Below are positions 5,864-43,989 of a stretch of 64,000 nucleotides of DNA, piece after piece. The notes beneath the pieces are model-generated. The model worked only from the letters and a program-made list of their open reading frames with translations. It made no database searches and was not told the DNA's origin. Position 1 is the stretch's first letter; every line of letters starts with the position of its first letter. The DNA is taken from the NCBI GenBank assembly GCA_977016875.1, contig CDRNST010000257.1, forward strand, positions 496,001 to 560,000, read 5' to 3'. A program made the position numbers and the translations under genes. Origin of the DNA: Pavona decussata. Its lineage: Eukaryota.

Positions 5864-8301
5864 TTAGTAGACACATGCAGTGTCCAGGTCCCACTCGGCT
5901 TGGTAGCAGCTCGCTGTTGGGGTGACGTAATGCTGTTGTGGGAAGGGTGGCTTGGGGTAAGAATCCTTCGGCATTGGAAGAAGTTGCTGACTTGCGTGCG
6001 GGCTCACAGGTTTGGGTTCTCTGCACTCTGGCTTGATGTAAGGTTTTTGTGAATCGGGGAAGGCCATACTGAATAGGGCCTCGGGACTGCACACGAATTT
6101 ATACACATAACGCTCTCCTGCCACTTTCTGCATAATTCCTTTTTCGTAATAATAGCGCAGGGAGCGGCTGAGTTTATCGTAGTTCATGGCCGGCCGATTC
6201 TTTTGAATGCCCCATCTACGTGCCACCTCTTCAGGATCAATGAGTTTGAACTCCATACCACGCCCTGTCCAAGCGATAAACGAGGAACATTCAGGCTCGT
6301 CTAAGAGGGCCACTAGAAACTGCCAGAGCTGTAATGAGCCCCTCCTTTGGAAGGCCCTGGGTTCTGGGTAGGTCACACCGTTTGGTACTTTAAATTCAGG
6401 AGCTGAAAGATAGACAACAGGAACGTGGTTTAGTATGAACATGGTTTCTTGCAACTATTTTCAGGGAGACTTGAATACTGATTTCAATTTACTTGCGATA
6501 TAACCGAATAAGATACCTCTGGTTGCTTCGGAAATTGAAGTTATACTCGACATTCGATTTTCGATTACCGGTATTCAAGCGGCTCAGAGACTCATACGCA
6601 GGATCGAAAGAAAATCCGTAGAGAGAAGCAATCCGCTAAGGAGGTCAACGTCTAAATTTGTCGACTGAGTTTTCAAGAATTTTCACTTTAAAAAGTATTG
6701 TTTGAACTTTATAACATCCCCTACTAATCAAAAAGCTATAGCCACCCTGCGTGTACAGGATGATAATAAACATGACAAAATACTGATCAGCCCGCTCGGT
6801 ACTGAGCTTTCACTAAGTGAGCGCACTTCACAATTTCATCCGGTCAATAGACGCAAACGTTACAGCTCCCTTGCACAGTATTATTAACAGGAAATCATCT
6901 CCAGATAGCTTTCACTTTAATGGTTATGGCTTAAAATTTCCTCCACAGCATCAAAACATGGAATCACTATGTACAACATGATCAAAAGCTCAATAAACGG
7001 TTCTGCTAAATGGTCAAGTTTATAATCTCTTTTACTGACTAAAAAGTTACAAACTGCACTTCAAAAAAATTAATGCTTGATAGCTTTTATTTGAATGACT
7101 GTCAGAGTTGAGGATTTCCTCGGCGGCTGAAATTGTTAGAACTTCCTCGACAGCGTAATGAGAAATATGGCAGAAGAATACTACGGGATATATATAGACT
7201 TTATTTGAATGACCATAATTTAGGATTTTAATTAAAGACACAAAATAAAGAATTGCATCGAGTTTAGCTAGGGCGAAGAAGGAAATTGGGCACTGTAGTA
7301 CTGAGGGCAAGGTATTTTCTCGGCCGTTAATATCTTGATATTAAAAGTCTAGGTTTGCCTGAGATGTATAAGAGTTGAAAGAGGAAAAAATTCAGATTAC
7401 GATCAAGGAAAGTTTGAGTTTATATAAAATCTTATATTACGCAACATTGGGGGGATTATCAAGGCCTGAAGATGACAGGTCACGCGCGGATTTTGACAAA
7501 GGAAGTAGAAACTCGTGCAAACAACAAATATCAAACAAGCTAAAGTCCCATTCATCAGACAGATTTCTGCGCCAGACGCAGACTTGAACAAACAGGAGCG
7601 TGGTATTTTTGTCATATTGACGCACATCAGTTGTTCTCAGTAAAATTTGCCTTGAACGGCAAGGGCAGATGTAGAGGAAGTTGAAAATATAGGCACATGC
7701 ATCTGAAAAGGTTGACCCGGTTGTATTCATTTGTAAATATTGTAGCTGCATCTGTTAGGTATAGATCGCTTTGGGCAAATATTATATTTGTTGTCTATGT
7801 TTTGTCGATTTCTCTGCCCACATGCAAAATTGCAAGCAGTTTTTAACAAAGTAGAAAATGGCTTGGCCGCGCTGAATTCATTTGTAAATATTTTAACTGC
7901 TTGCTTATCGCCTTATCTAGATGTTCGTAGAGATCGTGCGTAATGGCTATTTTGCACAAATACGATTATTCCTTCTTTTCAGTTGTCGATCTAGCAATGG
8001 CAAATAAAATTATGTGAAACTTATTGAGATCACGTACCTATGTCTGTGGATGAATTCTCAAAAAAATCGTAGACTACTTTTTGACTGGCTAGTTTGAATT
8101 GATTTTTGTTGCTGAAATGTAACCTCCCGTTGCAGAGCGTTATATTTTGTCGTAAAATTTATGTTTACTGCTCAAACAGTGATCTAATTATTTCCCAGTG
8201 CGAGTTTAGGAGAAATCAAGTAAACCTGACATGGTAAAATGTTAAAAAATTTAGCTTGTAGTCGTCAAATTTGCTCTTTCAAAGTAAAACATTGTGAAGT
8301 C

Positions 8302-8332
<31 letters not shown>

Positions 8333-41456: not shown

Positions 41457-43259
41457 TTTTTAGCATGTCCACTTAGCGCTCAAAATACTTGTAATATTCT
41501 TCCGCTATGGATACTATTAGCAACCCTCTTGGCAACATGGCGTTAATAGCTACGAATATTAATTAATCAAAAGAGTGTAGCCCCAGCAAATAATCAAAAG
41601 ACGAGCTTGTGCGTGGCAACACTTTACAGCTAATTACATGCGCTGAATAATAAAACAGCGATGATACATTGTACATTGTTTACTTCTAAAATAAACGTCA
41701 GAGTTTTAAGATTTACGCCATGGTTACCCAAGGGCGTGTTTGTAAATGTGCCAAGTTTTTCTCATTATCGTCAAGTATTGAGTGTAGAAGCATGTCACAT
41801 TCTTTTGAAAGCAGGTTAAACATCTCTCATACTCCAGGTGGACCGCTTTGTTTTGGATAATTAACGCCCCCGCCACGTGCTGTGGAATAACAAAGCCTGT
41901 CTTACCGAGCACACTTCGGGCGTACTTTGCGGTGACCCACGTTCACTCTGCTCAAATTTTTTTTTCTGGCCAGCCAAGAATAATTCTTTCGCTGTAAACT
42001 TTGGCATTATTGACGTCAAAAACTCTTAATATGCTGTTATGTGACTCCAAACTGCTTGTTAAAATACAACCGAACGTTAAACTCAGGGTTTAATAAAGAA
42101 GTGCTTGAAGCAAAGAAATACTAATGAAGGTTAACAAATCTTGCCTCCGGGCTACAAAGCTTGGATGAATGAAACCAACTGACTTGCTGTTGTTTCGAAG
42201 GCTTAAGACTCGCTCAAGCGCGAACAAGCCATTGTTGAGTTGCACTGAGGGGTTGGCCAGCATTATTCCCGTGAACCAATCAAACCCACGGCCTCGCAGA
42301 TTTATTTATCCAACGAGTGTATTGTGACGAACAAAGAACTGATATTATTGCTGTGAATAAAAACGCCTTGGAGATTCATGAAAGAGCCATTGTTATAGTC
42401 TCATAAACTTTATTTATATATTGCCTTGTAGGAACTATCTGACTGGATTTCGGGGCTGGTATATACAAGCGGTCTCTTGTACAGCATACAGAAAATATTA
42501 AACACAATGTCACAATCAGCACGGAACTTGCTTGTTAATGCTTCAATGTCCTTTTAGAATCCATTTATAGAACACAGAGGTTATTTACATGATCTGTATT
42601 CAAGAGTCATTCTTAAAACGCAACGCTGCCTAAAGAACTCTTACTTCTTGTACATACGCATTTTCTAACTGGCTGAATACATAATTACGTTCGTTGAAAC
42701 TCGTTCGGTATACAGTGGGTTGAAAACAACGCACTTCCTTTCGGGAAGAATTGACAAACATCAAACCTAAATAACAAGAACAATTCCTGGTCGAATATTA
42801 CTGATCAAACCTTGATCAACTCGATGTTGATCTTTTTTAATGCCAGTAGTTTTCCATGCAATTGCGCTCGATATGGAGGGCCATGTGGTAAACACGTGTT
42901 CCTTTTTTTGTACTTCCAAGTTCCATCCAGACCAAAAGTGTCATTGCATTCGGCATTTCTACAGAGTCGCGACATTGTCAACTGCAAATAATGTTCACAG
43001 AACGTGACAGGAAATTTCTACAAATTATAACCGAGCGAAACGGAGAGCGCAGCTCAGCCCTTTCACCAATCGCTCTCCGTCCGCTACCTCGACGGGTTTA
43101 ATTTAATTTTATACAAACTTTGTACAAACTTATGTTACATTCGCAGGCTGCATAGTGAAGGCATGTTTGCTCTCCATCTTTGTAGGTATGTCTTTTGACA
43201 TTTGTTCGTCATTGTAGATTTTGTTCTTTATTGTTTATGAACAGAGCTGTGAGCGTGCA

Positions 43260-43989
43260 TCAAGGGTTCGTTTCATTCTGTTTGTGTGTATATCTCTTAC
43301 ATTTGCAAGACCGAACGACTCGCACTCTATATTTTCTTTTTGTGCCATCGTTGCAGTGAACGGTCACTTTTTTACTTCTGACCTGATCTGCGACGCAACG
43401 CCACTCTCTTTTTCGACCACTGATAATTTTGGAATATTCCGGAAACCATGGAAGTTCATCCATCGGCAGGCATTTGCCGTCGCAAATTGTATCCCGGATC
43501 GGTCGCCGGCTTGTGCAAAAGCCATTCGACACATATCTGCGAATCCGGATTCCTTGACATCCGAGGTTGAGAATGCCTGCGAAGCAACAATACACAAAAT
43601 TGATCAACAACTGATTTTTCATCGCAGTCCTACCCAGTCATGGCGAAAGACACGCACCACAACAGCCTGAATGAAAACTTCTGCAAGAAAAGATTCAATG
43701 GGTAAACAGCTCAGAATTACGTGAACTCACACACACATACACTAACACAGATAATACAATGTTAATATCGGTTCAAATCACCTGACGTTTTTTGTGGCTG
43801 CTCTAATTCCAAGTCTGTTTCCTCAGGTGCTGTTGTGGGGCCAGCTGTGCTGTTGGTTGTTACACGCGGGGTCGATTCTGTGGACGGTTCGTTTAGCTCG
43901 TTTTGGCGGGCAACACTTCTATGCCAACACATGCAAACGAGAGCCAACATGATAAAATTCCGATGCCAACACGTTGTAACTAAAGTCAT
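43260..43989 (-). CDS. SOSTDC1: Sclerostin/SOSTDC1 (Wise)-like secreted cystine-knot protein, 2 exons, ~174 aa
   Basis: Exon 1 43782-43989 (signal-peptide-like N-terminus, Thr/Ser/Glu-rich linker), phase-1 GT-AG intron, exon 2 43260-43576 (GCQGIRIRRYVSNGFCTS..ICDGKCLP..EWRCV..VHCNDGTKRKYRVRVVRSCKCKRYTHKQNET). Matches the SOST/SOSTDC1 cysteine pattern and CKCKRYT tail. Confidence 0.92.

Follow-up and report, generated by a model that had tools for sequence, protein, structure and literature searches.

Roch and Sherwood (2014, Genome Biol Evol; PMC4079206) described a neighbourhood in which Cul1 and ETV1 flank SOSD, a SOST/SOSTDC1-like gene. Limpet and amphioxus have these genes near one another, a sea anemone has them on one scaffold, and in human they share a chromosome. 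In vertebrates, ETV1/MEOX2/SOSTDC1 and ETV4/MEOX1/SOST were recognised by Collette et al. (2013; PMC3861057) as paralogous neighbourhoods produced by genome duplication. In the present study we examined a 64-kb window of a stony coral genome (C257:496001-560000, zero N), situated on a contig of 1.09 Mb in an assembly totalling 602 Mb. On the minus strand of this window lie a cullin-1 gene (Cul1), a SOST/SOSTDC1-like gene (SOSD) and a PEA3-type ETS gene (ETV), in that order and head-to-tail. The first-pass annotation of this DNA had reported the SOST-like gene upstream of the PEA3 gene, on the same strand and with no intact gene between them, and all of this holds. Cul1, directly upstream of SOSD on the same strand, is a third member of the neighbourhood that the annotation did not mention.

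The coral window thus contains the same three neighbours as the published Cul1-SOSD-ETV1 neighbourhood (PMC4079206) and leads to the same conclusion. The linkage between SOSD and ETV is older than the cnidarian-bilaterian split, as the first-pass annotation had proposed for the case that the organism is a cnidarian, because it is found in this coral, in the sea anemone Nematostella and in the hemichordate Glandiceps talaboti, and has been published for limpet and amphioxus (PMC4079206). The ancient linkage is real and ancestral, and it is already known, the neighbourhood having been published in 2014 (PMC4079206) and the vertebrate paralogy in 2013 (PMC3861057). A stony coral now confirms one of the few gene neighbourhoods to have survived since before that split, and adds the hemichordate case, the changes in orientation, a loss in the sea anemone Exaiptasia and the location of conserved non-coding elements; the earlier paper is silent on Mox and on orientation, unlike the present analysis. 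The locus is of value as a well-documented example and as a modest clue to the route by which Mox came into the vertebrate block, and not as a discovery. Compared with Nematostella, where ETV is convergent with SOSD at a distance of 13.5 kb, the coral has Cul1, SOSD and ETV arrayed in tandem along a single strand, with a repeat-filled spacer of 26 kb between the last two. Compared with the vertebrate ETV4-MEOX1-SOST (17q21) and ETV1-MEOX2-SOSTDC1 (7p21) blocks (PMC3861057), it has the same ETV and SOST-family neighbours but no Mox between or near the pair, one copy per gene instead of paralogue pairs, and a spacing of tens of kb instead of hundreds of kb to megabases.

The SOSD gene consists of two exons on the minus strand, as does vertebrate SOST. 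Exon 1 (43782-44549) contains the 5' untranslated region (UTR), an ATG at 43989, a hydrophobic N-terminus and a variable linker, and was delimited by tblastn matches to the N-termini of the proteins P0003 and P0006 and by a spliced contig of 1902 nt. Exon 2 (42418-43576) contains the cystine-knot domain, with coding sequence (CDS) at 43576-43260 including the stop codon and a 3' UTR extending to approximately 42418, based on a match to Pfam Sclerostin and on RNA-run contigs covering 42418-43577. The single intron between them (43577-43781, 205 nt, GT..AG, phase 1) is defined by the joint in contigs of two runs, X10 and X5, and by the genomic sequence, which together place the end of exon 1 at 43782 and the start of exon 2 at 43576. 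The complete CDS is 43989-43782 + 43576-43260, or 174 codons. The 1902-nt contig, which joins 44549-43781 to 43575-42443, belongs to one of the organism's public runs, the recorded type of which is only a guess at RNA; because it crosses the 205-nt GT..AG intron, SOSD is considered to be expressed and spliced. The locus is also present in public runs and coral metatranscriptomes. Low-depth (3-4) contigs of run X5 show extra joints in or near the intron, at 43575->43657 and 43700->43826, so that a mini-exon or alternative splice at 43657-43703 (-) is possible at weak support.

Family membership was assigned by profile and structure matches, with the signal peptide judged by eye. The open reading frame (ORF) at 43260-43622 (-) scores 88.7 bits against Pfam Sclerostin (PF05463; cut-off 27) versus 44.6 against DAN, and in a profile search it was the single locus in the 602-Mb genome to pass PF05463. 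Nine other DAN-domain loci occur elsewhere in the genome, four of them at 80-102 bits on DAN. Sclerostin is the only strong match to SOSD among solved structures (E 1.4e-14), followed by the C-terminal knot of VWF at E 0.12, and no gremlin, NBL1 or PRDC chain appears among the structure matches even at E<=10. All eight of its cysteines align with those of human and mouse sclerostin (2K8P, 6L6R, 2KD3), and the knot cysteines are invariant in an alignment of 14 cnidarian orthologues. A profile built from nine cnidarian orthologues retrieves PF05463 proteins of crinoids, a sea urchin, two hemichordates, among them the cloned Saccoglossus sclerostin, and Capitella. Among named proteins, that of Desmophyllum pertusum is the closest (88%), with those of Actinia, Acropora, Nematostella, Exaiptasia and Porites next, so that the organism is an anthozoan cnidarian and almost certainly a stony coral. 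These assignments agree with the trees of Roch and Sherwood, in which the Nematostella and Acropora orthologues group with bilaterian SOSD (PMC4079206).

The coral protein does not contain the loop-2 NxI motif through which vertebrate sclerostin binds LRP5/6: at 43430-43475 (-), human PNAIG is aligned to PWFPE, and all of the cnidarian orthologues aligned read LP(W/F)FP at this position, with no NxI. Since the motif is missing, labelling coral SOSD a Wnt antagonist is unjustified by its sequence. Judged from this loop, sclerostin-like Wnt antagonism would be less probable for the coral protein, and membership of the SOST family would be untouched.

The last coding exon of the ETS gene (5864-6415, minus strand) encodes the ETS domain and C-terminus, with the stop codon at 5864-5866, and is 95.6% identical to residues 264-446 of P0028, a 446-aa coral PEA3 orthologue; the ORF at 5864-6454 (-) contains a full Ets domain (Pfam Ets, 120.8 bits). 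Upstream coding exons were mapped by tblastn with coral, Nematostella and Exaiptasia PEA3 proteins to approximate positions within 10984-16768 (-), namely 16768-16532 (with a small intron inside), 16415-16362, 16212-16126, 15359-15012, 14302-14201 and 11106-10984. Every exon of P0028 has its counterpart in the window, at 54-96% identity, and P0028 itself has both Ets and ETS_PEA3_N (PF04621, 56 bits); no single window exon searched alone reached the PF04621 threshold. The best named relatives of the gene are ETV1/4/5. In human, ETV1 is adjacent to DGKB and ETV5 to DGKG; a search for such a diacylglycerol kinase neighbour found no DAGK exons on contig C257.

The SOSD and ETV coding sequences are 26.5 kb apart, measured between the stop of the former and the start of the latter, and no protein gene was detected in this interval; ten further long ORFs were without a Pfam match. 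The homeodomain helix-3 signature WFxNxR is absent from all six frames of the window, as it is from the Nematostella, Desmophyllum and Glandiceps flanks examined, and none of 150 homeodomain matches scored genome-wide falls on C257, in keeping with the earlier remark that no Mox homeobox is visible between the two genes. Beyond the window, alternate 10-kb pieces within ±200 kb on C257 likewise contain no homeobox signature; apart from the continuation of Cul1, these pieces gave only short (~20-40 codon) translated matches to loci of other species.

The same neighbours recur in other animals. On Nematostella chromosome OW051986.1, ETV (18,397,993-18,408,418, plus strand) and SOSD (18,421,899-18,422,727, minus strand) lie tail-to-tail with 13.5 kb between stop codons, an interval that was fully covered and in which zero genes are called; a cullin is located upstream of SOSD on the same strand. 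In Glandiceps (OZ203280.1), SOSD (958,706-959,886, plus strand) and ETV (1,006,245-1,045,678, minus strand) are convergent and 46 kb apart, with no other gene called in the flanks viewed (the middle 26 kb of the 46 kb lay outside the view). In Desmophyllum, the order and strand of the cullin and SOSD are those of the window, with the cullin first, and ETV is not within the ~10-kb flanks viewed. In Exaiptasia, SOSD and Cul1 are neighbours on scaffold LJWW01000013 but convergent, SOSD being inverted relative to Cul1. Cul1 is therefore found directly beside SOSD in all four anthozoans examined (the window, Nematostella, Desmophyllum and, inverted, Exaiptasia), and the Cul1 exons of the window match the cullin next to SOSD in each of the other three. 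By our own estimate, two given single-copy genes would fall within 50 kb of each other by chance at a rate of ~1e-4 per genome of such size.

The pattern is not uniform, and several observations weigh against a neighbourhood simply inherited intact. In Exaiptasia, ETV is on LJWW01000003 and SOSD/Cul1 on LJWW01000013, and because the genes are on different scaffolds, each hundreds of kb from the scaffold ends, we regard the pair as broken in this species. The linkage can therefore be lost. Capitella SOSD has neither ETV nor Cul1 nor any other called or detectable neighbour in the 10-kb flanks viewed. Among corals, the position of ETV was seen in this window only, where reads were placed on just 4 kb of a spacer full of high-copy repeats. 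The common orientation of the two genes, which the first-pass annotation had stressed, does not stand as a conserved feature. Human resembles this coral in having the pair in tandem with SOST on the upstream side, versus tail-to-tail in Nematostella and Glandiceps, and on a four-taxon tree two changes are needed under either ancestral orientation. At the position in Exaiptasia where ETV would be expected (LJWW01000013.1:520132-540907) there is an 858-aa gene without a Pfam family.

Conserved non-coding sequence was sought by blastn (word size 11) of the window against the Nematostella, Exaiptasia, Desmophyllum and Glandiceps loci. The coral and sea anemones have approximately ten such elements in common in strictly collinear order, several within ETV introns and five in the 3.5 kb that precede the ETV start codon. 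The best of the intronic elements, at 11907-12036 (-), is 87.8% identical over 131 nt to the same Nematostella intron and 81% to Exaiptasia, has all frames closed and is in no annotated isoform. The collinear upstream elements (17099-20293, minus strand) comprise 17099-17187, matched in Exaiptasia, and 17416-17492, 17622-17744, 19185-19238 and 20179-20293, matched in Nematostella. The last of these, 3.4 kb upstream of the ETV start, is 83% identical to its Nematostella counterpart; it and the intronic element are conserved at the DNA level above most ETV coding exons. No conserved non-coding sequence was found in the ~22 kb towards SOSD (20.3-42.4 kb) or around SOSD against the Nematostella and Desmophyllum flanks, the alignment to this second stony coral ending 1.5 kb past the SOSD stop.

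Genomic regulatory blocks and conserved microsynteny are reportedly held together by cis-regulatory constraint, as Kikuta in 2007 and Irimia in 2012 are said to have proposed. The coral locus resembles such blocks in having a developmental transcription factor with deeply conserved elements beside unrelated neighbours over a very long time, and differs from them in that its elements stop short of the neighbour and that orientation and adjacency are not strictly kept. We consider it highly probable that Cul1-SOSD-ETV is a relic of a neighbourhood present in the last common ancestor of cnidarians and bilaterians and inherited by descent. That ancestor would have had Cul1, then SOSD as a single SOST/SOSTDC1-type DAN-family gene, and then a single PEA3-type ETS gene. 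In the coral lineage, transposons and a transfer RNA (tRNA) array have probably inflated the SOSD-ETV spacer to ~26 kb, and local inversions have probably altered orientation lineage by lineage, mostly sparing the neighbour relations. In vertebrates, Mox lies between the pair, and two genome duplications produced ETV4-MEOX1-SOST and ETV1-MEOX2-SOSTDC1. The simplest reading is that the pair was kept by descent under weak constraint at most, because no elements extend across the neighbour, the orientation has changed and the pair is broken in Exaiptasia; the retention was probably passive for the most part, or weakly constrained, and not enforced by enhancers common to both genes.

The first-pass annotation had suggested instead a genomic regulatory block, in which interleaved long-range enhancers co-regulate an FGF/MAPK effector and a secreted BMP/Wnt antagonist and selection acts against breaks. 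The survival of adjacency in three distant lineages (including PMC4079206) and the deeply conserved non-coding elements of the ETV locus would fit such a block, as would the contacts of the SOST promoter with enhancers between MEOX1 and ETV4 in human bone cells (PMC7825314), which point to some shared regulatory landscape in vertebrates. Nevertheless, the coral-anemone elements are all inside ETV or at most 3.5 kb upstream of it, and in Nematostella this upstream side faces away from SOSD. Conservation is zero at 20.3-42.4 kb, and even the other stony coral aligns no further than 1.5 kb from the stop of SOSD, although short or diverged elements could escape blastn at this word size (11). A regulatory block is defined by conserved elements that extend into its neighbour or across it, and this architecture is not found at the level of sequence, and given also the unfixed orientation and the Exaiptasia break we judge this explanation unlikely. 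Two others are more remote. Genes that belong to the same ancestral linkage group remain together on a chromosome, where they could meet by chance or be brought together independently with no historical signal, to which the varying orientation would lend some support; this is very improbable, as the pair lies within 13-46 kb in coral, sea anemone and hemichordate, with Cul1 as a third gene in three anthozoans, and limpet and amphioxus agree (PMC4079206). An artefact of assembly across the repeat-rich 26-kb spacer, for which its repeats and sparse read placement might be cited, is the least credible of all, since the contig extends to 1.09 Mb and the same neighbours occur in independent assemblies of other species.

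The location of Mox bears on how the vertebrate triplet arose. The Mox cluster of this coral appears to be on a contig other than C257. A candidate is a group of four strong homeodomain matches within 66 kb on contig C84 (C84:1670619-1736538; three minus, one plus). A search of the genome with an approximate, degenerate nucleotide pattern for the N-terminal part of the Mox homeodomain gave zero matches, a result that carries no information. The Nematostella Mox cluster maps to chr2:20.11 Mb (nv2), far from Hox/Evx at 11.7 Mb (PMC10719294 and supplement). The Nematostella SOSD-ETV pair is at 18.4 Mb of the 22-Mb chromosome OW051986.1, which may be the Mox-bearing chr2 of nv2. A speculative extension, which we rate as unlikely, is that SOSD-ETV formed an extremely ancient regulatory neighbourhood, under weak constraint, on the extended-Hox ancestral chromosome. 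Mox would then have moved within that chromosome into the existing pair to give the vertebrate triplet, and the human SOST enhancers towards ETV4 would be what is now left of a landscape that the two genes shared ancestrally.

The Cul1 gene is represented in the window by its 3' part (49029-64000, minus strand). Its exons extend from at least 49029 to 62410 and on beyond the window, reaching at least the equivalent of window position 66.2 kb (~C257:562238), as identified by Pfam Cullin, scores to human CUL1 and matches to anthozoan cullins. Against human CUL1, two of the window exons reach 85 and 72 bits, versus 34-48 bits against other cullins. Human Cul1 is on the other arm of chromosome 7, whereas coral Cul1 is adjacent to SOSD.

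The intergenic interval between the last upstream element of ETV and the SOSD 3' UTR (20294-42417) is occupied by reverse-transcriptase fragments of long interspersed nuclear elements (26571-28003 and 29662-29961), an array of tRNA or tRNA-like matches (30651-36882) and high-copy repeats. Rfam gives ten tRNA or tRNA-like matches in the window, eight in the spacer and two downstream of ETV (2279-2351 and 3743-3815); they occur on both strands and, within the spacer, are arranged as a repeated unit. A first look at the spacer repeats gave 14,440 matches in the rest of the genome, and a 600-bp repeat at ~32716-33315 has dozens of genomic copies at 95-97% identity. A match of ~1 kb between window positions 100-1118 (+) and the Nematostella SOSD-ETV spacer was considered as a syntenic element or inversion-block marker and rejected, tblastx having identified it as a Penelope-like retroelement. 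This fragment has a GIY-YIG nuclease motif and is 60-70% identical at the protein level to the Nematostella spacer copy, a coincidence that mimics synteny.

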